Below, piece by piece: positions 29,343 to 47,287 of a stretch of 64,000 bases of DNA. Source of the stretch: Caecitellus pseudoparvulus (taxonomy: Eukaryota; Protista; Bigyra: Bicosoecida); assembly GCA_965644315.1 (NCBI GenBank), contig CBFFRQ010000035.1, forward strand, positions 1-64,000. Reading direction: 5' to 3'. The position numbers and the translations under genes are program-made. Every line of letters starts with the position of its first letter. The stretch's first letter is position 1. The notes under the pieces were generated by a model. The model did no database searches. It was not told the DNA's origin and worked only from the letters and a program-made list of their open reading frames with translations.

Positions 29343-30939
29343 CTATTTGCAGCTGCCAGCACCAGCACTGTCCAGAGCGCCCAGCAGCTGAGAGCCGATG
29401 CTCTGCAGCAGGGTCGACTCTTTTGTGGGCACCGCGGACCCTTCAAGGAGGACCTGGCCCTCCTCTTTCAGCCATGTCACGCCGACATGTCCACCGCGAG
29501 CACTGGCCTGGTACGCATGCAGTCGCGTGTGACTGCCGCCAAAGTGGTCAATCCACAAGGGTCCAAGAGCACAGTGGGCACTGCCGGTGACAGGGTCCTC
29601 CGGGACCCCGCACCGAGGGCCGAAGAAGCGGGACTGAAAATGCACTGGCTGCTGCAGCACATCTTCTGACGCCTCTCCTGCGGGCTGCTCCCCCTGGCTG
29701 GTCACAATGACCCCTCTGGCTGGAATGCGGGCTATGCTGGCCATGTTGATGGAGGAGGTGGCGGGCAACGCCTGGAAGGCGTCGGGTGAGACTTGCGCGA
29801 TGACGTCTCCCAGCCCTGGCGTGGTGAACCACTGCACACCAGGCTCCACAGGCACGCCGGTCGCTTCTTCGAGCAAGGCACTCCAGGCAGCCGCATCTTC
29901 TGGTTTCGCTGGCTGGGGGGGAACTGCGGGGAACTGCATGCTCAAGGCGCCAGAGGGCTTGCGGGTGACAACCAGCTTCCCCGCAGCAGAGGTCATCGCC
30001 ACGCTGGTCGCAGTGTGGGGAAGGTATCCGAAGTGCCACAAGGCAGCTGCACTGGCCAATGTCGCATGTCCACACATGCCCACTTCTGTTGCTGGCGTGA
30101 ACCAGCGCAGAGTCCAGGCGCCAGGCTCAGACGCATCCCGCTGCAAGAATGCCGTCTCTGACAGGTTGTTCTCGGCTGCCAAGGCTTGCATGCACTTGGT
30201 CAGTGCGTCTGCAGGGTTTAGCTCAGATGGGAGGCTGCCGTGGCCTGGCAGCAACACGACTGCTGCTGGGTTCCCTGCAAACGGCGTGGAGGTGAACGCG
30301 TCCACCGTGTACTGCTGCACGCGCGAGAACTGTGGCCCCAGCGTCAACTGCATGTCATTCCACTGCTCCGCGCCATGGTCCACATCGGACGCCCCGCACA
30401 TGGCAAAGCCACAGCGGGCGTACAAGCCCACGTTCCACTCCTTCGCAAGCAGCGCCATGCGGGTCAGCTCAGGGTGTGAGCTGCACACGTTGCGAATGTA
30501 CTGCTTCACAGCCCAGTTGGCTACACCCATCTTGCGGCGATTTGGCGCAGTGACGACAGAGTGGATGCACAGCACCTGCCCCCCAGCCACGTGCTGTGAC
30601 ATGGACTCCTCCTCTGTGCAGAGCCAGTCCAGGCTGAGAGTCAAGCACCACCTTGTATCCATGGGCAGGGCGTCTGAACGCCATTGACCACTCACCTAGC
30701 CTATCCTTGTCTGTGGTGGTACCGCACACATATGCAACGATGTCGCCCTGAGCATCAGGTGCCACGTAAAAGAAGTCTCGAGCAACTTCGCTGCGGAATT
30801 TCAACATGCTGGCGCTCGCTGCCTCATCCTCCGGGTAAGACTCAGCTTCCAGAGCTTGTACCGCAGCCAGATCCTTCTCCTCGATGAGTCTAAAGTCCAG
30901 GGCATTGGGGAACCAAGCATCCTCACTGCTTGCCGCCAT
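29343..30939 (-). CDS. Fusion of a PAA1/AANAT-like GNAT acetyltransferase and a PhzF/PBLD-family isomerase; exons 30939-30696, 30613-29343 (504 aa)
   Basis: GNAT: LEAESYPEDEAAS..ESMSQH..LCIHSVVTAPNRRKMGVA..LYARCGF. PhzF: VDAFTSTPFAGNPAAV, NLSETAF, LRWFTPATEVGMCGHATLA, EDPVTGSAHCALG. Intron 30614-30695 (GTGAGT..ACAG). Confidence 0.9.
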
Positions 30940-31255
30940 GATTGAGCTCGCGGAGGAAGCTGGTTTGCTTGGCTAACCTAGTAAACTCGCAGTGGCAGCT
31001 CTCTCCCTGGTCGAAGACGCAAGTGAATCAGCCCAAGAATAGTGTCAGGAATGCTGAAATTTAACTTGAGCCCAGTGTCGCGGCTGCTGCCGCCCGAGCG
31101 GCGTCCAGGCGCTGAGCAGGTTGCTGGCCAAGCTCAGCGTCCAAGCACCTCATGACTTGCCCATTGCCAAAACAAAACCGGTGGATCTGAACACTTCAGG
31201 CTCTGCCCATGGTCTGGTTGAAGTTTGTATTGCTTTTTCCTAGAAGCTCCGAGGC

Positions 31256-34200
31256 ATGGGCGCGTTTCATGCTCTGGGCGTGTTGGTGTTGTTGGCGTTT
31301 CTCTTGCCTAGCCAAGCAAGATTCCGCAGCTCCCTCGGCAATGTGCGCCTGACGGACAGTGCCGGCGTGGAGATCGCTCACCACACATGCAATACCACGG
31401 GCGGCTACCTGCAAGTGTTTGACGGCGTGCGGTGGGGCTTCGTGGGCAGCAGTGAGTGTGCTTGCCGTCGCAGTGCCGATGGGCTTGTCTCCCTGTGCAA
31501 GCCGCGGGTGCAGGCACTGTGGGGTCGGCCGCGCTTGCCGCGTCGCAGGCGGCTTCGGGTCTGACGCGTACAGCAAGAACAGCGTGTGCAAGCAGGTGCT
31601 GTGCAACTTCGGGAGCAACGCGGTGCAGGTGGGGTCAGTGGTGCGTCCGTCGGGGTCGTACGTGGCGTGGAGTGATGTGAGGTGCGATGGTGAGCTGTAC
31701 GACGGGGGTGAGCCTGGTCTGGGTGGGTGCAGTCGTCGTCAGGCGGGCGTGAGTGGTGGGGGCGGGCTGTCAGATGGGAGTGTGGTGCACATGGTGTGTG
31801 CGAAGCCTGTCCCAGACGCAGCGACTCCAGCAAACGGAGGGGCGGTGGCGAGGGTTGTGGTCCCTTCAGAGTGGGATGAGGAAACTCCGGATCAGAACGT
31901 GTTGCTGGGCACGAGCAGGTCAGCTTTAAACACTCCTCACAGTCATGTTTTCTATTCACTCCCGTCCGGGCTCAGCTCCGCACCCAGTGTGTTCACCGCT
32001 GCTTCACAGCCTGGTGTTCACGCGACGGTTGCGGCACGATCAACTATCTCCTTCGACGTTGACATTGAGAACGTTCCCGGCAGCTCGATCACTGGATGGT
32101 CCTTGGAGTTGGAGCTGGCATCCAGTCAGTACCTGGACGCCGGTGACGTGGGCGTGATTTCCTCTTTGCCCGCCGCAAACGCAAACTTGACTCAGTACAC
32201 TCCCCGGTTTGTCGCCGATGAGGACTCTCGCGGCAGGGCCATTAATCCTGCCGTCTATGCCCAATTGGTGCCTGAGGACGCGTCGCAGTGGGGAAGCACT
32301 CAACCGCCTGGCACTTTCTTCATCACTAGCGGCCAGAGCAGCGGAGTTGCAGGCTTCGCCTGGAGCGTTCCCTCCGGCTTCGACCAACGCGTTACGTATG
32401 CCACCAAGCTGACGTACACCAGCTCAACTGGAGGCGGTTCGCACGTGGGCCCGTTCATCACCATCGTGCCGTATGTTCCTGTCAGGATGGTTTCTCCTTC
32501 CCCAGCCGTGCACCAGGACTTCGCAGTTGTGCAAGGCTACGCTCAGGTGTGGAGAGGGGGGCAGTGGGGCTCCGTCTGTTGGAACGATGATGTGAACAAG
32601 GCGACTCCAACAGCGAGCATTATTTGCAGGGCGTTGGGGTTTGTTTCTGCAACAGACCTCACCAGTTTCCAGTGGAACTCCCTCCCACACTCGTCCACCG
32701 GGCCGGTCCATATCGTGCGCCCGTCTTGTGCCTTCGGAAGCTTCAAGACAGGTGCTGCCAGCCAGCCAGACTCCATTGGCGCGTGTCTAGGCAAGTTCTC
32801 ACCGTTGGGGTCAACGGCAACCTGCGCAAACTTTGATCGCGCTCAGCACGAGCTGCGCATTTCCTGTGTCGGACAGACGGCACCGGATCCAGTTGACCTG
32901 AACGTCACGTTCCCAAGCGTCAACTCTGTACTCTACGCGTACGAGCCTGGGGACATGACTGGGACTGTGTCAGCGTCGTCATATCCCCCGTCGACAACGT
33001 TCACCGCCCCCCTTGGATTTGTGATGCGACTTGGCGCCTTGCCTGCCCGCTACGTGCGTGTGCGAGTGCTGGGCACTGCAGGTCAGCAGCTATCGCTGGT
33101 GCACTCTGCAGTTTCTGTGCCTGTAGCCGAGTTTGCTGCCGGCATCGCCGCACCGCAACCCTGGCACGCAGGGGACGGCACCTGGACTGCAACAGTGCCT
33201 GTATCGTTCTTGGCTAGCGACGCTGGCTTTGATTCATCGGACAGCTCGCCACTTCAGGGGACCTACGTGAAGTTCGGTGTGACTCCGGTGGATCAAGGTG
33301 GGGCGCTCTTGGGCCCCGAGCGCGTCGGTCCATGGGTCCGCCTGTCAATCAGGCCATCGCAGGGCGCTGCCCGCCTTACAGACCGCTTAAATGCGCCGTC
33401 CACAACACCGAGTGGTAGGGTGGAGTTGTGGAATGCGACGGCAGAGCGATGGGAGTCTACTTGCAACAAGAATTGGAATGGCGGATCGCACGCTCCCAGC
33501 GCTGCGTGCGCAATGCTAGGGTACAACGTCTCGGCGGCTTTCCCTGTTGATGCATATATCTCAGCATTTTCGTCGCCGACAGACTCTGCTACATCACCCT
33601 GGAAATGGTGGGGGGCCGTCGGAACGCGCATGGAGGCACGGGTTCGAGACTGTCGCCTTGGTCGCGACGTGTTTTTTGGCACATGTGCCGCTTCGAGCAC
33701 AGACGACGTCAGCATTTGCGCAGACCCTGAGCAGGAGCGTTATGGCCCAGCTCTTGTGCGCTGCTCTGTTCCGCGGGACTCTCCTCGCAGCGTTGGCGAC
33801 TGGATGTTCTTGACGTCTCCCAACAGTGCTGCTCCCATCCACGGCCACGACCCACAAAACTACGGAGGAACATACTCCCCAACTTCGCCTCGACAGTCAG
33901 CTTCACCAGACGCAAGTGTGACGGCAGCTGTATCGTTGAGAACTATTCAAGGCCTGTACCCTGCGCGGCTCCACGTTGCCTGGGTGGAACCAAGCGGATC
34001 CAGCGCCGACTCACAGCCTCTCCATGCCACTTTGTCACCCATCCTCACATTCCCCAACAGGACGAACTCGTACTATTTCAGCCCATCTTGGTTCGGGTCA
34101 GTGGGGGTACCGGATGGGCACCCGTCTGTGGGGCGTTCGGGGCAGGTGCAGGTGACCTCTGTGGTGGTGGCAGGGAGCACCGCGCCGCTGCAAGCTCTAG

Positions 34201-36587
34201 GGCTGGGCACAGCGGACTCTGCGGGCCCATACGCAGGCCGTTTTCGACTTGTCGTGCAGCCTGCTCGACCGGACGGGTCGTTCATGTTTCCCGCCATCGA
34301 TGGGAGGGATTCTCCAGCGTGGGGCAAGACAGTGTACACCCCAGTGTGCGACTTCAAGTCTGCAGCGCTGATGGCCTGCTCATGCGTTAGTTCGGATGGC
34401 CTCCCTGAAATCACAGTTGGGGAAATCACCACTGCTCGCCTTCGTGACACGGCTGGCTTCTCACTGCTGAGTGCTGGGTACCGGTTGTTCAGTGAGCCGT
34501 TCGTTGTGAGCACACGCCCTGCCTTGCAAGCTGTGCGGCTGATGGCTGGCGGCATTCCCAGCGGAACTTTAGATGGCCACCTTGAAGTGTATTCTGGGAG
34601 CAGGGTTGGATGGACGGCAGTCTGCCCAGAGAGCCTTGCATCACTCTCCTCGAGCACCAGGGAAGTCATGTGCCGCTCTTTGGGTTTCGACTCTCAATCG
34701 GCGCTGACAGCCACCACAAATGCTCGCTTTGCCCCAGCAGCAGTTGAGTCGCGACCATACTCTGCCTTTGATTGCGACGGGCTTGGTCGCACTGTTGAGC
34801 GGGTGCCAACGTTGGGGTATTGTGGCGTCGAGCGAGGGCCAGCTTGTACCTCCCGCACGAGGTTTCAACTCAGCTGCCTCCCACTGCTGCAGCACACGCC
34901 AGTGAGCACTGTATTGGACACGTCATCAACCTTCGTGCGCCTACAAGGCGGCGCAGATGAGTATTCCGGGCAATTGTCCCTGCTGCCACGGGGCAGTCAG
35001 TGCGGCCAGCCAGCGCTGTGGGGAGGCGTGAACAAGGAATTCTTCAACAACCGGGCAGCAAATGCTGCCTGCCGAGCAGTTGGCCACCCCGGTGCCGTGC
35101 TGTGGGGCAGTGGGCTGCGCATGTCTCTTTCCCTGCCGGCACCAAGCCGAACCACACCTGTGATGACGAGCTATGTGGACTGCCCCACAGGCAACGAGGC
35201 GTCCTTGGATGATTGCAGCAAAATACCGATTTCATCGAGCGGGATTCGGAACATGAGGGGCACAACTGCGTACGTGTCTCTAGTCTGCACCGTGTTCGAA
35301 CATTCGATGCTGCCATTCAAAGGAACAAGTTGCACTCCTGGCATGCTGGACGCTGGTGGCAGCGCTCCTCCGCGGGGGCAGTTTGCGTATGAGTTCAGCG
35401 ACCCCGATGTTTCCATGGCAGGCCGCCTCATGGTCCGTGTAAGTCGCTCAGTGTCTGGTATGGTGGAGGCATCGTGTTTCAGCAACAATGCCGCACATGT
35501 TGCGTGCCGGTCGGTGAATCCCTTGTTCGCTGGGGCTCAAGGGTGGTCCGTTGGTGGGACAACTCGAGACGTCGCAGCCTTTGCTGAAGCGCCTGCTTCG
35601 TCTGGGCCTGAGGCAGTGAGTGCTGTGGCTTGCGAAACAAATAGCTCGAGCTTCTCAGCCTGCATCGCGGAGCTGCAGAACCCCAGAACTCTGACTTCCT
35701 CCGCAAACTTGGTGTGGCTCAGGTGCGTTCGCCCTGGCGAGGAGCGCGTGGCACTGGCCGACGATGGCCCAGGCGCATATGTCCCGGATGCTCCCAGCGG
35801 TGATGATGACGATGGCGGCGTCCCAGCAGGATCGGGATCTGCGGATGACGAGCGCTCAGTAGGTGCCATCATAGGAGGAGTCTTTGGCGGACTTGGCGCC
35901 TTGGTGTGTTGCTTCTTCATCGTCTTCGGCTTGAAGCGCGTGGTGTTTGATGCATCAAAGTCTGGCATTCCGTCAACTGTCCGCAGCACGACCTCAGGTG
36001 GCGCTGGCTCACGGCAGCCGGCGTCTGTATTCATCAGTGCGCTGCATAGCACTTCCGTACAGCCCCCGAGAAACTCTGCAGGCCAGCTGCACAGCAGGGC
36101 AGCACAGGCCCCGTCCGGTGCACCCATTCCTTCAAGCGCAGACCTGGAGACGGAACAAGATCCCAGCGTAGTCCCTCCTGCCTCAACCTCAGGCGTGCAG
36201 CAACCTGGACCTGCTCGTGTCAGTCCCATGGCGTATCCTGGAATGGCGGCATACCCAGGCACGGCACCCTTTCCTGGCACGGCCCCCTATCCGGGAATGG
36301 TACCCTTCCCTTCTTCACCACAGCAAGGCTCAACCTCTCAAGCTGCAGGTCAAGGCGCAGAGGGAGCATCCTGGAGCTCCCAGCCTCCGTATGCATCTCA
36401 GGGTGCAAGCGCCACGAGCACTCTGACTGGCACCGCACCCCCCAACTTTGGATACCCTGGCACCGCAACGTGCCCAACCGGCAGCATGCAGGGCAGTGCC
36501 CTTTCTCCTTCGGCCCCTGCGGCTCCTACTTCTCCGGCCTACCCGATCCAGCAACAACCCGATGCCTACCCGCCAGCTTACAAATGA
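31256..36587 (+). CDS. SRCR receptor A: type I membrane protein with ~6 SRCR-like domains; exons 31256-31451, 31549-36587 (1744 aa)
   Basis: Signal peptide MGAFHALGVLVLLAFLLPSQA. Repeated VRL..G.L.V..WG.VC..A...CR.LG units near 31343, 32481, 33370, 34533, 34935 and 35400. TM IIGGVFGGLGALVCCFFIVFGL (~35865-35930). Pro/Tyr-rich tail ending YPPAYK. Confidence 0.85.
31343..31798 (+). repeat. Shared SRCR cassette copy 1 (other copies ~36942-37395 and ~39417-39872)
   Basis: ~455 nt from GTGCGCCTGACGGACAGT to CACATGGTGTG, near-identical in three genes including the intron. Confidence 0.95.
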
Positions 36588-36857
36588 GCCAGCGGGATCG
36601 TATTTCAGTGTCCGCGTTTCTGTTGATTGCACATGCATTTGGTCACAACCTTTTTGAAATGCATGTTTGAGTGCTTCGCCAACCTCGCGTGCATGGTGCT
36701 CACGCCTCCTGCACCATCAGTGCCACCTCCTGGCGCTCAAGCACGCAGTCAGCCAGACACAGCTTGCAAAAACATTTACAAAGAAAGAATGACAGCCCAC
36801 TCAAACACTTACACGGAGGTTCTCCCAAATTTTCTTTTGTCGCTCGCTTGCTGCAAC

Positions 36858-38167
36858 ATGGCACGGCGGTCTGCTCTGACCCGCCTCGCCATCTGCCTGG
36901 CGTTTCTCACACTTGCAGCCAGCAAGACCGCGCCCGGCACCGTGCGCCTGACGGACAGTGCCGGCGTGGAGATCCCCCACAGCAGCTGTGGTACGACGGG
37001 GGGCTACCTGCAAGTGTTTGACGGCGTGCGGTGGGGCTTCGTGGGCAGCAGTGAGTGTGCTTGCCGTCGCGGTGCCGATGGGCGTGTTTCCGTGCAAGCC
37101 GCGGGTGCAGGCACTGTGGGGTCGGCCGCGCTTGCCGCGTCGCAGGTGGCTTCGGGTCTGACGCGTACAGCAAGAACAGCGTGTGCAAGCAGGTGCTGTG
37201 CAACTTCGGGAGCAACGCGGTGCAGGTGGGGTCAGTGGTGCGTCCGTCGGGGTCGTACGTGGCGTGGAGTGATGTGAGGTGCGATGGTGAGCTGTACGAC
37301 GGGGGTGAGCCTGGTCTGGGTGGGTGCAGTCGTCGTCAGGCGGGCGTGAGTGATGGGGGCGGGCTGTCAGATGGGAGTGTGGTGCACATGGTGTGCGGTG
37401 GTGAAGGTGGGGGCGTGCGTCGGGGAGCCCGGAGGTTGAACGGAAACGACGCTGGCAGCACTATCGGAACCGTCGCTGGCGTGATCGGCGGCATCTTCTT
37501 CCTCGCTTGCTGCATCTCTTCGATAATCTTCTTCAAGCGAGTTGTCTTGGATGCATCGAACTCTGGCATTCCGACCTCCGTTTCAACACGTCAGACGGAC
37601 ACAATCGTTGCAGCGCAAGCACGGGCCATGGCACTGACTCATGCCTTGCGCGGGACTGCCGCATCGCCATCTCATACTACACACGTGTCTGCCCATCAAG
37701 GTGCCGGGGTGCAGCTTCCAGGGACGATGGGGCACCATGGACACAACCAATCTGCAATGGGTGTTGGGTTTGGTGCTGGGAAGGAGCAAGCCCCATCATC
37801 GACCAACGCACCCTATGGCAACGGTCCATACCCTTCTGCACCGCAAGGGGGACAGCTTGGAGGCTCGCCCTACCCATCCACGCAACCAGATGGCCAGGCT
37901 GGCACTTCGCCGTACCCAACGGCCCCGCAGGCGGCTGGGCCTGGGTATCCGCCTTCATCCCCGATCCCCGGAGCCCCTGCCATGGCGGGCACGTCAGCAT
38001 ACCCGAGCTCAAGTGCCTACTCTGGTCCCGCGGCCTACCCTGGCGCGGTATCGTACTCAGGGGCAGCAGCGTACCCGGGTCAGCCACCTCAGGTGTCCAG
38101 TGGCAGTGCTCCTCCGCCCCAGTATCCCAGCTATTCCCAGCCGCCCCCAACGTCCGGCTACTGCTGA
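36858..38167 (+). CDS. SRCR receptor B: single SRCR + TM + Pro/Tyr-rich tail; exons 36858-37050, 37146-38167 (404 aa)
   Basis: Signal peptide, SRCR cassette nearly identical to gene A, intron 37051-37145, TM IGTVAGVIGGIFFLACCISSIIFF, YP-repeat tail. Confidence 0.85.
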
Positions 38168-38346
38168 GCCTGTCAGGGAGGGAGCTTGTGTTGGTGTGTG
38201 CGCTGCGCCACAAAAGTGTGCGCCGTCAATGCATGCCAGTTGTGCCCACTGGGCAGGCTCAGTGCTGAGCTCGCGCGAGCATCTGTAGCCTCGACTTGTG
38301 TCGACTGCGACGAGGTGGGCAAGCCAGCAAGCTGCTGGCTGAGTCT

Positions 38347-39476
38347 GGTGGTACCCTGCAGAGCAGCCGAGCCTCTGGGGCGGGCAGGTGGGGTCGGCCA
38401 CCCTGTGGTACTTGAGGCAGCCTCGCAGGAGAGCGGCTTGCTGCTGCTGGGGGGCTGCAGGATCGTGCCTCGCAGGGATGGCGTGGCTTGTCCTCGGACA
38501 GTAACGATACGCCACTGGCCTGAAATCGCAGTGAGCATGTGATGGAATGTGTTTCATGTGCAGTGCTTGTCCTCTGGCTCTTCACCTAGCACTTGAAGTC
38601 TGTAGCAGTTTCCGTGAACAAGCCGCGACACGCTCAAGCTCCTTCAGGGAGACGCCCGCGTTGTCCCCGACGGCACAAATTGAAAGGTGCGCCGAAGCGG
38701 AACACTTCGACAGTGATACGAGTTGTTTGCTTTCGCTCAAGCTCTTGCACACTGTCCATAGCAAGCCATGGCCCGTCAATCTGCCCCGATGAGCCTCGCG
38801 CTCTGCCTGGCGTTTCTCACACTTGCAGCCAGCAAGGCCGCGCCCGGCACCGTGCGCCTGACGGACAGTGCCGGCGTGGAGATCCCCCACAGCAGCTGTG
38901 GTACGACGGGGGGTGCTACTCTGCAGAGCAGCCGAGCCTCTGGGGCGGGCAGGTGGGGTCGGCCACCCTGTGGTGCTTGAAGTGGTTTGGTGAAGAGGAG
39001 GCTTGGCTGCTGCTGCGGGGGTGTGGTATCGTGCCTCGCAGGGATGGCGTGGCTTGTCCTCGGGAAGTAGCGATGCGCTACCGGCCTGAAATCGCAGTGA
39101 GCATGTGATGGAATGTGTTTCATGTGCAGTGCTTGTCCTCTGGCTCTTCCCGTGCTCCTTGAAGTGTGTCGCAATTTCCGCACCAAGCTGCGACACGCTC
39201 AAGCTCCTTCAGGGAGTTGCGCGCACTTCCCCCAGCGGCATAAAAAGTAAGCTGTACCAAAGTAATTCATGTTGACAATGTATCCATTCGCATGCTTTCG
39301 CTCAAGCTCTTGCACACCGTCCATAGCGAGCCATGGCACTGCAAGCTTCCTTGACGAGGCTCGCGCTCTGCCTGGCGTTTCACACACTTGCAGCCAGCAA
39401 GACCGCGCCCGGCACCGTGCGCCTGACGGACAGTGCCGGCGTGGAGATCCCTCACCACACATGCAATACCACGGGC
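38347..39476 (+). repeat. Diverged tandem duplication, period 565 nt (upstream region plus start of exon 1 of SRCR copies C and D)
   Basis: CTGCAGAGCAGCCGAGCCTCTGGGGCGGGCAGG starts at 38356 and 38921; the ATGs are at 38768 and 39333; both offsets are 565. Confidence 0.92.
38768..38912 (+). pseudogene. SRCR copy C: truncated remnant (signal peptide and first ~20 aa of the SRCR domain)
   Basis: Matches exon 1 of gene B up to HSSCGTTGG, then joins directly to the upstream region of gene D. Confidence 0.85.
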
Positions 39477-40419
39477 GGCTACCTGCAAGTGTTTGACGGC
39501 GTGCGGTGGGGCTTCGTGGGCAGCAGTGAGTGTGCTTGCTGTCACGGTGCCGATGGGCTTGTCTCCCTGTGCAAGCCGCGGGTGCAGGCACTGTGGGGTC
39601 GGCCGCGCTTGCCGCGTCGCAGGTGGCTTCGGGTCTGACGTGTACAGCAAGAACAGCGTGTGCAAGCAGGTGCTGTGCAACTTCGGGAGCAACGCGGTGC
39701 AGGTGGGGTCAGTGGTGCGTCCGTCGGGGTCGTATGTGGCGTGGAGTGATGTGAGGTGCGATGGTGAGCTGTACGACGGGGGTGAGCCTGGTCTGGGTGG
39801 GTGCAGTCGTCGTCAGGCGGGTGTGAGTGGTGGGGTCGGGCTGTCAGATGGGAGTGTGGTGCACATGGTGTGCGGTGGTGAAGGTGGGGGCGTGCGTCGG
39901 GGAGCCCGGAGGTTGAGCGGATTGGGGAACTTCAACATGTTGTACCTCATTGGTATCGTGCCTTTGGTGGCGCTCATCCTTCTGTCAATCTGGGCGTGCC
40001 GCGTTATCAAACGGCGTCAGCAGGCCATGCTGCAGGTCATGCAGGAGGCTGGCATCGCCCCAGGCGCCCTTGGCTCTTACCAGATAGCTCAGCTCACTGC
40101 ACAAGCACAAGCGTCGTCACGAGTAAACCCGGTCCACGCCTCACAAGGCGCAGGGGGTGGCATGCCAGGTACATACGGCCAGCAAGGAGTGAGTGGGCAA
40201 GCTGGTGGCGTCACACATGCACCCGCAAGAGCACTCACCCCCCCCCCGCCTCAATCACAGCCCGCAATGGAAATGGGCGGCATGGGGCACCCTGGCAGCT
40301 CGGGATACGGGGGCTCAGCAGCATACCCTGGGCAGCCCCCCAGTTTCTCTGCCACACCTGCTCCTGGGGGGCCGTACCCTGGGTACCCGCAGGCTGGTGC
40401 ACCGGGGGGGTATATGTGA
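39333..40419 (+). CDS. SRCR receptor D: single SRCR + TM + Pro/Tyr/Gly-rich tail; exons 39333-39525, 39623-40419 (329 aa)
   Basis: Signal peptide, shared SRCR cassette, intron 39526-39622, TM MLYLIGIVPLVALILLSIWAC followed by RVIKRR. Confidence 0.85.
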
Positions 40420-40505: not shown

Positions 40506-43500
40506 TCAAATGTCGCCCCCTGGGCCAGGGTGGCTGCCGTAGTCATATCCGTGGTGCAGCTGGCTGGACTGGCTGGTGGCGTATTCCTGACCGTACCCTT
40601 GCGAAGGGTCTGCGTGCCCTTGGTAGGAGTGAGGCTGCTCATACTGGCTGCCATACCCGGCGCCATGGTGAGGCATGCCTTGGCTGCCAGGCAGCCCCTG
40701 TGACCCGTACGCATCACCTCCGTACACATGCTGGGCTGGCGGGCCAGGGGGCATGCCTGCTGCGTACTGAGGCATGGGGGGCTGCGCCTGCATCTGACTT
40801 GCTGGGGCGCCGAAGCGCGAGCGTCGAGGTGCGCCTGAGCCGGGGGTGCTGCTGCCTCCCTGCTGCTTGCGCCGAATGCGCCGCTTGAGCTCGGAGAGCG
40901 CGTGCTTTTTGAAGCCCATGATGAGCTGTGGGATGGTGGGGAAGATGCGGCGAGCCCAGAAGAATCCGTCAGGGGTAATGTTAACCTTCTCCTTGACGAT
41001 GGACTGCTTGCGCTTGGAAGGAGGTATCCAGGACAGGATCAGCGTGCCCAGCAGCGTTTCGTCGTGGCCCGCGTAGGGGTGCACCAGGTAGGGGATGCGG
41101 TCGGGGTCGGCACTTCTGCGGTCCCGCAGCTCAGCGTCCACGTGGTCTTGCAAGAGGTCGCGGAAGTTGGAGTCCTGCCTGGCTTCACGGATGAGGTCAC
41201 AGAGCCGCTCCATGTGCCGGGCAGTCAACTCATCCAGGTCTGCGTACTCGTACGGCTCCATGCGCTTGGTGGTGGCGTTGTACTTGCTGCCCATGAGCAG
41301 GCGCTTGCCCAGGGCGCGCTTGCCGTGCGCATCGCCGGCAGGCTTGTCCAGCTCCTTGATGCTGAGGTGCACGACGACGGAGGGGGCAAACTTCCACGAC
41401 ACGGTGAGGTGGTCGGGGCCCTTGGAGGACGGGCGGATGACGTACGTGTACAGGGGCTTGTCTTCCAAGTACCGCACGGCGGCGGCGCTGGTCAAGTTTT
41501 TGAAGGTGGAGTGCCCGATGGGGCGCAGGATGAGGGAGGTGCCGTGGGCGCCCCGCAGGCGCGCCCCGCCGATGCCGTCCGCCTCGTCCATCTGCATCTC
41601 GCCGAGCTCCTGCGCAATGGCATCCTCCAGCAGGCGAAGCGCGACAATGTCCACGTGCGGGTCCATGGCTGGCAAGGGCGGCGGCGCACGCGTCATGTCC
41701 TGCAGGGCAGTCAGCGTCACGCTGTGGTAGGCGTAGTCGACCTTCTGGACACGCACGCGGATGAGGGCGTCCTCTTTGAACAGGCGGGTGAGGTCCACCT
41801 GCGCCCCGTACGGGGCTGCGTCGTGCATGCCTGGCTGCGTGGTCAGCCCCTGCTGCTCCAGGTGCTGCTGTTGTTCGGGAGTCAGCAGCACGTCGCGGTT
41901 GAGGATGCCCGAGACGCCGCACTCCAAGCGCACGACCAGGCGGAAGTCCATCACCCGCGTGATGCGCGCCTGTGTCACCAGCCCCGGGTACAGCGTGTGG
42001 GGCGTCTCGCCGGTGAGCATGGTGAAGGCTGCAGCGGGGCTGGGGGGTGCCCAGGGCAGCGTGATGCCCAGCCCCGGCACCCGCAGCTGGTGCTTCATGC
42101 CCTGCAGCTTGTACAGCGCCCGCTCGTTGCCGGCGTCCTCCAGCGCAGCGGCGAAGGCCACGATGTCGATCTGGGCCAGGGCGTCGTCGTTGTGCGTCAC
42201 CCTGTCCCTGCCGCCCAGCTGGCTGATCTCCTCTTCGCTCAGGAAGCCAGGGGAAGACAGCAGTCCCGGGAAGGCCTCTTCTGGTGGCCAGCTGCCTGCC
42301 GGTCCAGGCAGGAACTGCCCCTGCCGGGAGGTGCTCAGGGCGCCGTCCCGTGGTAGCTTGCCCTGCGTCGCCTCGAAGAGCTGCTTCAGGAAGCCCAGGC
42401 GTGTGTGGCGCACGACGTTGCGGATGAGGGCGCGGTAGGTGCGGGGTTCGTCGGGGTGGGGCGGCGTGCTCTGGGCGCCGACCTGCGCCTCTAGCTGCTG
42501 CTCGGGGGACAGCTGCTTGTCCAGCTCCCCCGCCACGTGCACTGCGATGTGGTACATGGCCGGGTGGACGAGGGTGGCGTCCAGGGGGTTCCGCTGCAGC
42601 GCGGGGGCCTCAGCCGGCCCTTCGTCCTCCCGCATGTCGCCGTCGGCGCTGAAGTCGTACTTGAGGGCGAGGGGTGCGCCCGCCAAGGCGGGGTCGGGGA
42701 TGGTCAAGAAGGGCGCGGCGTTGTTGAAGACGGTCTGCTCCATGAGGCGCTTGGCTAGCAGCGCGGAGCGGGAGACGAGGGGGGTGGGCCACAGTGTGGC
42801 CACGCCGCGCAGGGGTGCTGGCGCAGCGCGCTGGGCTGCGTCCACTGCGGCCGCGTCGGGCTGCGCGCGCAGCTGCGCCTGCAGCGTCTCCAGCAGGGCC
42901 TTGGCCTTGCGGGGCCCTAGGCCGGGAACGAACTGCAGGAGGGGCTCCGCGTGCGGCGTGCGTACGAGGGAGTTAATGTCCACGCCGCAATTGGCAGCGC
43001 ACTCCACCATGACACGCTCCAGGGCGCGCAGGAGAATGCCCTGGGGCACGCCCCCCTGCTGTGGGTGCAGAGGCAGGCCCAGGGGCTGCTTGGAGCTGGA
43101 GGCCATGCCAGGGGCCAAGGCGGGGCCGGCTGAGGAGGTGCCGACGACAGCGGCGCCCTCCAGGGGCCACAGTGCCGCCAGCGCCCGCAGGGGGTGCTGC
43201 AGGTACCTGCCACTCGCCACTGCCAGGCGCATGGTGCGGCGTGTGTCTGGGAACTCCTTGGCGTAGGCGGGGGATTCTGCCAGCGCCAGCGGCGCATCTG
43301 CATCGGCCAGGACCACAGGCAGGGTGTGGGGCAGGGCGGGTGCGACCGGCTCGGGCGGCGGCAGGGCATCAAAGCCACGGCGCGGGGCCACCTCGGGCAG
43401 TGGCACCGTGCGCAGGCGGCGCTTGGACCAGGCGCCACCCTCCACCCACTTGGCCAGGACGGGGGCGAGGTCGCGCAGGGCGCCGCCTGGTCCAAAGGCG

Positions 43501-46500
43501 CCTTCCTGCAGCAAGGCGACAGAGCCCTGCGTCTGGGAGCGGCGGGGGGCCCGGGAGCCCTGCTTGATGGCACGGATGCTGTCGCCCTCGAACTCCATGG
43601 CGCTGGAGTCCATGGCAGCGCCCGACAGCACGGCCGCAAGGGAGATGCCCTTGTCCATGTAGGCGCGCAGGGCCCGCCGAGCTGCTCGCCGGGCCCGGGC
43701 GATGTGCTCGTGGGCGGTGTTGGAGGCCTTGGCGACGCCGTCCTTGAGCAGGCGGCGAGAGGCCCCCGCGCCGCTGGGACAGACCACCGCCACGTCAGGC
43801 GCGTGGGCCAGCATGAGGCGCACGATGGCAGCCTGCGCCTCGTCCTGCTTACGGGGCAGCGCCACCAGCTCCAGCACCCGCCCATCCCGCCCCAGCACCA
43901 CCCCTGTGTCTGCATCGCCACTGCCACGGGTGGCAGGTGCCAGCACCAGGACACGGCAGCGCGGGTCCCACCTCGCCGCGCCTTCGGATGCCATGGCCGC
44001 CGCCTCTGCCTCCAGAGCCCGGGCGGTGTCCAGACTGCCGCCAGGCACATCTGCCAGCGTCTCGCGGGGCGCCATGGGCGGGCGGCGGAAGGGCGCCGTC
44101 ATGGCGCGCGCCCGCAGCGCTGAGGCGGCCTCCCACGCCACGCGCTCCTGCGCCTTGGTGGCCAGCTCTGCGCGCAGCTCCTTGTCGAAGCTGGGCAGCC
44201 AGAAGCGGTTGATGGCGGTGAGGAGGATGCTCAGGCGCTCCTGGTCCAGACGGGGCAACTGCAGCCGGGCGCGGAGGGAGGGCACACAGGCGCCGGGGGT
44301 GAGGTCCCCCCGGCCCAGGTACACCGCCGCATCCGCTTGCAAGGAGTACACCGCAGGGAGACTGCCCTCGGCCCGTGCCTGGGCGGCAACGTCCAGCCAC
44401 TGCTCCATGCCCTGGGCGCTGAGGTACAGGGGCGCCAGCCATGCAAGGAACCACGCCTCACCATCCAGGGAGGCGGCATCCGCCTCCTCCTCCGGCGTCA
44501 GCTTCACAGGGTGCTCCGTGGACAGCGCGCAGGGCAGGTGTGCGCCGGGGGGCAGGTGCAGCTTCTCCAGGTGTGGACAGCGCTGCCCCATGTGCACCTC
44601 CAGCTTGAAGAGGCCACGCTTGGCGCCCTGTGCCAGGAGCAGCCACTGGGCCGGTCCGCCCACCCGCGCCGCCCAGTGCTCCACGTGCAGGTGGTCGGCT
44701 TGTGCGACGGGGAAGCCGCCAGGGCTGGGTCGGGAGGGAGCCTGGCCCACCTCGTGGCCCAAGAACACCCGTGTGCGGTCCCACCCCGCTGCGTGGCCGA
44801 AGCCCGCCTCGCAGCTGAAGTCTGGTCTGCGCTGCACAAGTGTCGTGGAGGGGTGGGGGTAGGTGACGTCGGCCAGGGTAGAGTCGTGCACGTCGTGGCG
44901 GTGCACTTGGGCCGCGTCTACGAGGCGGCGGGCGGCCTTGTCCAGCGGCTGCTCCGCAGCACGCGCCGACGCCCACGCCTCCAGCGCCTGGCGTGCCTCG
45001 CTGGGCTTCACGATGTGCTGCACTTGGCTGAAGGCGGCCACGGGTTTGTTGCGCAGCGCCTGCAGGCCGTACATGGCGTGGCCGATCTCCAGCTCGTCAC
45101 AGCCCTTGCTGGTGGCCAGGGTGGAGACGTGGGCGTGGTGGCGGAACACTTGCCGGGCAAGTGCTCGGAGGCCAGGGTGCACGGCCAGCTCCAGCCCCGC
45201 CGCGAACCGCGCGCTCTTGAGCACATCCTCCTCCGACTCGAAGGCAGCGCAGATGCACGCCTCGATGGAGCTCTGGAAGGCGCTCTCTGTGACGTGGGGG
45301 GGGGCTTCCTGCCGCCCCGGCTCCTGCACGCAGCGCTGGAGGACGCTGGGCGACAGGGTGAAAGTGGCGGCGAGGAGGGACCCCCCGCCGCCCTGGGCCG
45401 CCGCGTACAGTGCGAGCTCGCCGCTGCTGCCCTTCACTGCCGCCAGCTCCTCTGCCTTGGCGGCCTTGGACACCAGCAGCAGGGCAGTGGCCTTCGTGTG
45501 CAGCGCCTTGGCGGCCAGGGCAGCGTCGGCCAGGGCGGGGGCGCCCAGCTTGTCTGGTTCGCTGATGCACCCCAGCACCTCGGCCTGGGCTTCGGGGGAC
45601 ACCGCCTCCACGGCGGCCTGCAGAGCAGCCAGGCGCCGGGCGCGATGTGCCTCCAGCGCAGCGCCAGCGGCACCAAAGCTCGCTGGCGCTGCTGCCTGTG
45701 CCGCTGCCTCAGCATGGTAGGCTTCGGAGTTGGCGCCGTCAGCCTGCAGAGCCTGGACGGTGGCTGACAGGGTGGCGGCGGCGGCGTTGGCCTGGGAGTA
45801 GTGCCGCACCCACTCCTCGTCCAGGTCCAGGACGCGCCAGAGGTGGTGCAGGCGTAATACGGGCGGGAAGCTCTCCCGGCGGTGGGCCCACACTGTGCAC
45901 ACTTCCAGATTTGCCGACAGCACCAGGCTGAGGATGGCGCTGACGCCGTCAGTGAGAGCGGCGAGGACGGCGGGGTCCGAGGTGGTGGGCCCACCGTCTG
46001 GGCCCACCACCGGCTCGCCGTACCGAGGGTCGGCTGCGTAGCTGGCGAAGTACTGGTTGCCGCAGACGCTGTCCCTGGACACGTCGTAGCCAGACTCGTG
46101 CAGCTCCACCAGGAGACGGGTGGCGATCCAGGCTGACTCCTGCATGGCCAGGGCCGTGTCGGCCGCCAGGGCCGCCTCGCCCTCCTCCCCCAGCAACTGC
46201 GCCCGGCTACCCCGCAGGGAGAAGAGGCGCTCGGGGATGTCTGCCTCGCGCATGGCGCGGTCGACGTCGGAGACGAAGAGACGCCCCACCTCGTCTGGCT
46301 CGAAGGCGGCGGCCATGAGCTTGGACAGCTGCTTGCTCTGGGCGGCGTCAGGCGCCCCGTCGCCCGGCACCGTCTCCTCAAACAACTCGTCGCCGTACAC
46401 CTCCGACAGCACCTGCACCGCCAGCTCGGGGTCGGGCTCGTCCATCTCCTGCTGGGAGGCTAGCATGGAGGTGGCAAAGGCGCCAAAAATACTCTCGAAG

Positions 46501-47287
46501 TCCGTCATTTCCTCCGCCGACACGGTGCTCGCGACGGCTTGGACTCGCTTGCGTGCGGCGCGTGGCACTCGGGGGCCTTCCCGCTCGATGAAGTCGTCCA
46601 TGCCCTCCGAGTCAAACTCCTCCTCTTCTTCGAAGCCCCCTCCAGCGGCGTGGCCGAGGGGCGCCTCACCAGCGGAAGCCTTGCGGCGCTCTCTCTGTGA
46701 AGGGGGTGGGAGGGGCGGTGTGGAAATGCAACGCTGCTGAAACGCCAGCGCGGCGGGCTGCGCACCTCCGCTGCCTCGAACGACTTCAAGATGTCTTCAT
46801 CACCAGGCAGACGGGGTCCATCTTCTGAGGTCAAGAACTCCCCTGCGGCGTTCTCCTTCACCAGCGCCAGGTCCTCGTCGTCCAACACTGTCTCCCGCTT
46901 GGCTCGCAGGCGGCGCTTCTTCCCACGCTTGCCCGCCTCTGCACCTGAGCCAGCTTCATCCCCACCATCAGAGTCAGAGTCAGAGTCGTCCGAGTCGTCA
47001 CTGGAGCTCTCCCGGTCGTCGGAGCCCTCTGAGCCGTCGGACTCTGCGCCAGCATTCCGGGCGCCCCCAACTTCCGCAGCACCATCAGTCTTGTCTACAA
47101 AGCCATCGTCCTCGTACGAGTCCACGCTGGCGCCGTCCTCCTCCCCACCACTGGCTGCATTGCCCCCACCACCATCACTCTCCTCTGCTTCGTCCACAAC
47201 GTACTTGTGGCGGGCCTTCTTACTGACGCCAGGCTGCAAGTCTGGATCGCCGCCGCCTGGGCGCTTGGCTCCACCGACGGAGGCCAT
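40506..47287 (-). CDS. SPT6: Transcription elongation factor SPT6; exons 47287-46766, 46694-40506 (2236 aa)
   Basis: Acidic N-terminus with LDDEDLALVKEN, ADIPER, GRYLQHPL, HhH LQFVPGLGPRKA, VFNNAAPFL, NPLDATLVHP, S1 domain, tandem SH2 (HSTFKN..IRPSSKGPDHLTVSWK). Intron 46695-46765. Confidence 0.95.

Follow-up and report, generated by a model that had tools for sequence, protein, structure and literature searches.

Why do three neighbouring genes of the protist Caecitellus pseudoparvulus, whose bodies have diverged from one another, share a segment that is nearly identical even across its intron? The genes lie in the first 64 kb of contig C35 (CBFFRQ010000035.1), a stretch of GC-rich eukaryotic DNA (about 60-72% guanine plus cytosine, GC) that we call the window; the assembly comprises 30.6 Mb in 215 contigs. 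Together with one 5' remnant (R) they form a tandem array on one strand between a PhzF-family gene and Spt6. An earlier note on this DNA had described intact genes A, B and D of 1744, 404 and 329 amino acids (aa) and a remnant in tandem, and these lengths were reproduced exactly. Each gene has a single phase 1 intron with GT..AG borders. The shared segment, in the following called the cassette, appears to encode an N-terminal SRCR-like domain. We consider it likely that interlocus gene conversion among old tandem paralogues is the best explanation of its identity between the genes. The gene models and the cassette copies (lengths in nucleotides, nt) are:

31256-31451 + 31549-36587, + strand: gene A, 1744 aa, intron of 97 nt
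31256..31451, + strand: exon 1 of gene A, encoding the predicted signal peptide and the first third of the SRCR-like domain; ATG at 31256, donor GT at 31452
31452..31548, + strand: intron of gene A, 97 nt, GT..AG, phase 1, inside the cassette
31549..36587, + strand: exon 2 of gene A, with the remainder of the cassette, a body of ~1350 aa, five Pfam SRCR stretches, a predicted transmembrane (TM) segment and the tail
36858-37050 + 37146-38167, + strand: gene B, 404 aa, intron of 95 nt
36858..37050, + strand: exon 1 of gene B
37146..38167, + strand: exon 2 of gene B, with the cassette end, an RRGARRL linker, a predicted TM segment at about 37460-37534, the tail and PPQY at 38114-38125
39333-39525 + 39623-40419, + strand: gene D, 329 aa, intron of 97 nt
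39333..39525, + strand: exon 1 of gene D
39623..40419, + strand: exon 2 of gene D, with the cassette end, an RRGARRL linker, its own predicted TM segment at about 39934-40002 and the tail
31343..31798, + strand: the A copy of the cassette, 456 nt, which matches D at 98% and B at 96%
36942..37395, + strand: cassette copy in B, 454 nt, with the intron of 95 nt
39417..39872, + strand: cassette copy in D, 456 nt

Joining exon 1 of gene A to 31549 gives a single frame of 1744 codons; read without splicing, the gene runs into a stop at 31564. The joined coding sequences were translated by script as a check of frame and length, and all searches reported below were made exon by exon.

The cassette was defined by repeat finding, a four-way alignment and a sliding-window comparison in 50-nt windows. 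Its borders are the first base of the Val codon in a VRL motif and the second base of the codon for the last Cys of the domain. This confirms the borders that had been described for gene A. At both edges in A the identity falls from 98-100% to 30-40% within a few bases, so that in the sliding-window check proposed by the earlier note the flanks are not as similar as the cassette. Nine mismatches separate the 456-nt cassettes of A and D. Between A and B, 11 differences are found inside 31376-31402, and the rest of the cassette holds 5 substitutions and a 2-nt indel in the intron. The intron matches as well as the exons (95-97% identity among the copies, with 5 variable sites and one indel over 97 nt), in agreement with the original description of a ~455-nt segment that is near-identical across its intron. 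Among the exon differences outside 31376-31402, three are synonymous and three non-synonymous. Because homogenisation extends to the synonymous sites and affects the intron no less than the exons, selection at the protein level cannot explain the identity of the cassette. A search of the 30.6-Mb assembly at the DNA level, which had also been proposed, and at the protein level located the cassette in A, B, D and the remnant and nowhere else.

Three other readings of the shared segment were ruled out. Purifying selection alone is incompatible with an intron that is equally conserved, retroposition with the presence of the intron, and classical exon shuffling with tract edges that lie inside exons and not at introns.

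The substitutions themselves have a conspicuous composition. CpG transitions make up 7 of the 12 substitutions among the cassette copies outside 31376-31402, with CpG holding only 19% of the cassette bases, and 5 of the 6 private changes of D belong to this class. Such an excess might reflect methylated cytosines in the array or a hypermutability of CpG.

Judged from their sequences, A, B and D are old paralogues with diverged flanks and not unrelated bodies. A and B share their TM/juxtamembrane region at 76% DNA identity over 67 nt; the alignment score of 31 compares with a shuffle mean of 9.1 (standard deviation 1.4, z about 15), was reached by 0 of 500 shuffles, and BLASTP gives an E value of 0.001 for the same region. 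The similarity of A and B around the TM segment that had been noted earlier is thus real, but it is not confined to the protein level. The signal-peptide coding region of A is colinear with those of B, D and R (p 0.006-0.02) and diverged; the signal-peptide regions are ~70% identical and the other flanks are unalignable. D has a TM/juxtamembrane part unlike that of A and B, as had been stated. Its tail had been called unrelated as well, which does not hold, as the last ~35 aa of B and D are 54% identical (E 1e-6). Likewise, the view that the genes share the cassette alone is correct for the edges in A but not for B and D, which have a longer tract in common:

B 36892..37444, + strand: longer tract of high identity between B and D, extending from the 3' half of the signal peptide through the cassette and over a 45-nt linker

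Outside the cassette this tract holds isolated mismatches only, at 36907 and 37440.

These flanks bear on the idea of a single recent partial duplication or domain shuffling, in which a young 456-nt segment would have been pasted once onto unrelated bodies. Each cassette copy carries 3-6 private changes in a star-like pattern, and the array holds a tandem duplication of 565 nt, both of which speak for such an event. The diverged homology of the signal-peptide region of A with B, D and R and the old TM module of A and B speak against it: homologous flanks mean related bodies, each of which already had the domain. In addition, the cassette edges lie in-frame inside exons and carry no insertion scars. 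A further difficulty comes from a short variable patch within the cassette, which together with the duplication is described by the following features:

31376..31402, + strand: variable patch with two alleles, one form in A and D and the other in B and R, encoding the loop before a 'GGYLQV' strand
38347..38911, + strand: duplication unit 1 of the 565-nt tandem duplication, holding the remnant R with ATG at 38768 and a predicted signal peptide
38912..39478, + strand: duplication unit 2, with the upstream region, predicted signal peptide and cassette start of D

The two forms of the 27-nt patch differ at 11 sites, three of them synonymous, and encode 4 amino-acid differences. None of 200000 simulations packed 11 of the 17 A/B differences into a single window of 27 nt, which makes their clustering significant. 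All nine informative sites of the patch (9/9) group A and D against B and R. The signal peptide and the linker group B and D (and R) against A, which conflicts with the tree of the patch. From this conflict it follows that at least two non-reciprocal exchanges are needed. A patch that is 41% diverged, including synonymous sites, amid a nearly identical remainder, and whose tree conflicts with that of the flanks is hard to obtain from one recent pasting event, which we therefore regard as very unlikely. The A-like stretch in D is bounded by positions 31376 and 31472 and is thus 25-95 nt long. Among B, D and R the identity rises along the gene start from 67-73% in the 5' half of the signal peptide to 96% in its 3' half and 100% at the start of the cassette. 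The two duplication units, which repeat the upstream region, signal peptide and cassette start of D, lie head-to-tail and are 80-96% alike, such that the duplication is older than the last homogenisation of the cassette. Of the cassette, the remnant has the initial 70 nt, in which the patch is of the B type, and its open reading frame (ORF) stops after 70 codons. The B-type patch is thus retained in the remnant, and D now carries the A-type patch.

Interlocus gene conversion in tandem duplicates is known to leave mosaic tracts with sharp edges and homogenised non-coding sequence, and it needs residual homology (PMC3966226, PMC3924837). The array differs in no essential respect from this general case: it shows a sharp-edged tract, homogenised non-coding and synonymous sites, and a mosaic with conflicting genealogies. 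Within this framework, repeated interlocus (non-allelic) gene conversion would hold the DNA of the N-terminal SRCR-like domain, including its intron, at 96-98% identity. Conversion tracts would start and resolve only in sequence that is still alignable. In A they would stop at the domain edges, and between B and D they would continue for about another 100 nt. Two events would be the minimum, a homogenisation of the whole cassette and a separate exchange of 25-95 nt that gave A and D the same patch. As the homology of A ends at the domain edges, the domain-exact edges need no selection for a 'module'. The earlier proposal that one domain is copied between old paralogues is well supported by the sharp edges, the homogenised intron and synonymous sites, the diverged homologous flanks and the conflicting patch. 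The array is thus most likely a case of domain-limited concerted evolution in a tandem receptor family, a well-known process with an ordinary mechanism; what is unusual is the lineage of the host and how far the SRCR-like domain has diverged.

Several results weigh against this account of a converted, spliced, SRCR-type receptor domain. The cassette has a GC content of 66% compared with 60-63% in the flanks, so that the signal of GC-biased conversion is weak. The conversion tests compare paralogues within one genome, with flanks too diverged to align. Contigs from RNA libraries that match gene A contain no spliced joints. Neither cassette exon alone gives a match to PF00530, even at E <= 10. 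A HMMER scan of exon 2 found no true relative of the cassette among 1.84 billion representative proteins. Finally, an AlphaFold model of exon 2 alone reached a mean predicted local distance difference test (pLDDT) of 36.5, which is unusable, and was not taken to a fold search.

Near-identical repeats of ~450 nt are prone to assembly and polishing errors, in which copies are corrected from one another or a repeat is misplaced. The independent evidence on this point consists of Logan contigs only, which are of limited use for depth and splicing; the assembly of these contigs stops at the edges of the cassette, and no long read was seen that crosses the whole array. However, none of the copies has lost its private differences or its own intron length. 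The 5' junction of A is crossed by a 2978-nt contig from a marine metagenome (X5), which covers 31202-31426 and extends 141 nt to one side of the junction and 84 nt to the other. In the same metagenome a 400-nt cassette contig has a depth of 25.5, compared with 6.9 for the flanks (about 3.7x). A depth of 147.8 versus about 44 was found in run X9, so that the cassette is enriched 3.3-3.7x across these two unrelated runs. The collapse of the cassette into one contig at this depth is the only hint from other samples that copies inside one genome resemble each other more than orthologues of different species do. A 2239-nt contig of the A body begins 30 nt inside the cassette, as expected from the k-1 overlap at a graph branch, and a loose end at 31798 shows the continuation into B/D beside that of A. 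Given the private differences per copy, the junction contig from the metagenome and the raised cassette depth, an artefact is unlikely, and we give this explanation hardly any credence.

Another sample of the same organism (run X3) has a loose end at 31800 with a 164-nt continuation that resembles the B/D linker without being identical to it. This continuation could be a fourth copy or a divergent allele.

The RNA libraries contributed 7 short pieces on gene A, one of which starts inside the intron; they could be derived from DNA. Splicing and expression of the genes are nevertheless suggested by the canonical splice sites, by the restored reading frame and by an SRCR alignment that continues across the junction.

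Is the cassette an SRCR domain? SRCR domains comprise about 100-110 residues, and those of group B pair their cysteines as C1-C4, C2-C7, C3-C8 and C5-C6. From VRL to the last Cys the cassette domain has 120 aa with six Cys at the places of C1, C3, C4, C5, C6 and C8, and it is without the C2 and C7 cysteines of group B. We built a home-made profile from 19 SRCR domains, comprising the Pfam-matched stretches of this genome and the domains of eight database proteins (P0029-P0036). Exon 2 aligned to positions 32-99 of its 100 positions with 11.9 bits, a score reached by 0 of 3000 shuffles, and exon 1 to positions 5-20 with 7.7 bits, which 5 of 3000 shuffles reached. With hhalign both exons were colinear with SRCR, weakly. 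A feature search of the ESM Atlas returned SRCR clusters at 0.82-0.86, which is below threshold and a lead only. Taken exon by exon and with this home-made profile, the domain appears to be SRCR-like and very divergent.

The HMMER scan of exon 2 gave 28 matches. The ten that were checked were artefacts or uninformative, and none of them carried SRCR: eight were bacterial SdrD_B repeat proteins sharing a short W.D..DG..D.GEPGL.G motif, the match to P0001 was the sum of 42 weak repeats, and P0020 had a sub-threshold DUF5853 match only. Exon 2 contains an extra acidic, Gly-rich loop (W.DVRCDGELYDGGEPGLGG; 31680-31730, exon 2 residues about 35-62), which mimics the N-terminal motif of SdrD_B repeats and thereby produces the 28 spurious matches. 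This loop might be a convergent metal-binding loop. A sequence search of the PDB gave no match, a JGI metagenome scan did not contain the cassette, and exon 2 of D had no match among 5.8 billion proteins.

Beyond the cassette, gene A carries further SRCR sequence and, like B and D, a hydrophobic segment followed by a tail:

32532..32732, + strand: internal SRCR domain 1 of A, Pfam PF00530
33405..33557, + strand: internal SRCR stretch 2 of A, weak Pfam match (E 0.0017)
34581..34721, + strand: internal SRCR stretch 3 of A, matching SRCR_2 and SRCR
34947..35246, + strand: internal SRCR domain 4 of A, Pfam
35412..35726, + strand: internal SRCR domain 5 of A, Pfam
35856..35936, + strand: predicted TM segment of A (hydropathy scan), then KRVVFDASKSGIP; homologous to B with 76% DNA identity
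36570..36581, + strand: PPxY motif of A (PPAY), four residues from the C-terminus

The five stretches found by Pfam agree with the about five further, divergent SRCR domains that had been reported for A. The region 31800-34530 (~900 aa) has no Pfam match except for two weak SRCR stretches.

By hydropathy only, the N-termini of A, B and D are hydrophobic, and each protein has one hydrophobic segment with KR or RVIKRR after it. They are therefore predicted to follow the plan of type I membrane proteins, with a signal peptide, a single TM segment and a basic stop-transfer sequence. The tails of all three belong to one low-complexity class that is rich in Pro, Gly, Ser, Ala and Tyr; A and B have a PPxY motif near the C-terminus, and D has none. 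Hydropathy, composition and the PPxY search revealed no opposing signalling modules and the TM segments contain no charged residue; no explicit search for immunoreceptor tyrosine-based inhibitory or activation motifs (ITIM, ITAM) was made. The claim that the genes couple one sensor to different signalling tails was overstated, since the three tails are of a single class, the TM/juxtamembrane module and the PPxY motif are common to A and B, and the end of the tail is common to B and D. Overall, the three gene products probably serve as binding proteins at the cell surface, combining SRCR-type outer domains with disordered tails. The plan of the family would comprise a signal peptide, at least one SRCR-type domain, one TM segment and a disordered tail rich in Pro, Tyr and Gly that often ends with PPxY. 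PPxY tails could recruit WW-domain ubiquitin ligases for uptake.

A polybasic VRRGARRL sequence lies between the SRCR-like domain and the TM segment in B (37417-37440) and D (39894-39917) only. It could be a candidate dibasic processing site, cleavage at which would release the domain.

PF00530 matches occur at three loci of the genome only: the present array, a 3392-aa ORF on contig C20, and a second tandem pair of SRCR receptors on contig C13 (935692-939643). The ORFs of the C13 pair have 592 and 616 aa with two SRCR domains each, and their tails are of the same AYPG/PPPQYS class with PPxY ends as in A and B. This pair is a mosaic as well: its blocks of 100% identity begin at the 3' end of the second SRCR domain and reach across the TM segment and the tail, and most of the second SRCR domain is only 64-76% identical. 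The homogenisation is thus not confined to a ligand-binding N-terminal tip. It looks like a general habit of tandem families in this genome and not like a device for such a tip.

This comparison bears directly on a reading of the array as a shared sensor under selection, in which conversion would be maintained so that one recognition domain serves receptors of different reach (the long stalk of A, the short B and D) and with different tails. It would resemble the paired immune receptors of vertebrates and would act in the recognition of prey, pathogens or self. The tract corresponds to the domain exactly in A, D differs from A and B in its TM/juxtamembrane part and has no PPxY, and the two alleles of the patch place 4 amino-acid differences in a surface loop, all of which would fit. 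The analogy with Siglec-11/16, Siglec-5/14 and the CEACAMs (PMC5701461, PMC4042635, PMC2832619) points the same way. So does the probable feeding of the organism on prey: a six-frame search of the genome found no chlorophyll a/b-binding genes (PF00504), and DNA of this organism is present in marine metagenomes. The lack of light-harvesting genes and the marine occurrence fit, and suggest, a heterotrophic marine protist. On the other side, the limits of homology alone give domain-exact edges too, the tails form one class without opposing motifs in the hydropathy, composition and PPxY searches, and in the C13 pair the homogenised part begins at the end of the second SRCR domain, most of which is divergent, and takes in the TM segment and the tail. 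Selection for a shared sensor thus appears unlikely to us. By analogy, the array might in its strongest form be a protist counterpart of paired receptors: selection for conversion would keep an SRCR-type tip identical on the long-stalked A and the short B and D, the patch would serve as a specificity loop with the remnant as a possible donor, and prey or pathogens would be recognised by a heterotrophic flagellate. We consider this quite improbable.

Gene conversion between old paralogues, the reading we prefer, has close parallels in vertebrate receptor clusters. In the pairs Siglec-11/16 and Siglec-5/14, neighbouring receptor genes have near-identical 5' parts, which code for the outer domain that binds the ligand, owing to gene conversion (PMC5701461, PMC4042635). 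As in the array, these are neighbouring type I receptors in which an outer domain is homogenised and the rest of the genes differs. The Siglec pairs have Ig-like V-set domains and oppose ITIM tails to a charged TM segment that recruits an ITAM adaptor, whereas the array has an SRCR-like domain, uncharged TM segments, one class of Pro/Tyr-rich tails and a protist host. In the CEA/CEACAM family the N-terminal ligand-binding exon is homogenised across a tandem family, with some members escaping (PMC2832619, PMC7042247). The array shares with it the homogenised N-terminal domain across tandem members with different membrane parts; the CEACAMs, in contrast, are mammalian members of the Ig superfamily with documented pathogen-driven selection. 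For the SRCR families WC1 and CD163 gene conversion was proposed as a homogenising force (PMC2906472), and these are, like the present genes, multi-SRCR type I receptors in expanded, clustered families. Their domains are canonical group B SRCR and easily recognised by Pfam. The single exons of the array cassette, in contrast, are missed by Pfam, and the domain has no C2-C7 pair and an extra acidic, Gly-rich loop.

Domain-limited concerted evolution, best known from vertebrate immune clusters, thereby extends to SRCR-type surface receptors of a marine heterotrophic protist. If the domain indeed binds prey or microbes, the array would offer a tractable entry into particle recognition by bacterivorous protists and thus into marine microbial ecology. 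The main value lies in annotation, as a divergent SRCR-like domain is missed by standard models. The mosaic also calls for caution when trees are built with this SRCR receptor family.

The array is bordered by two genes on the opposite strand:

29346-30695, minus strand: PhzF-family gene, upstream neighbour of the array
40509-46601, minus strand: Spt6, downstream neighbour of the array

The Spt6 protein matches an identical ENA metagenome protein, one relative with 42% identity, and distant animal and fungal proteins. On the Spt6 contig of the relative no synteny with the array was found. The 13.4-kb ENA metagenome scaffold with the identical Spt6 stops ~114 nt beyond the Spt6 stop, inside the 3' end of D, and therefore does not cover the array independently. 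The stop codons of the convergent genes D and Spt6 lie <90 nt apart.

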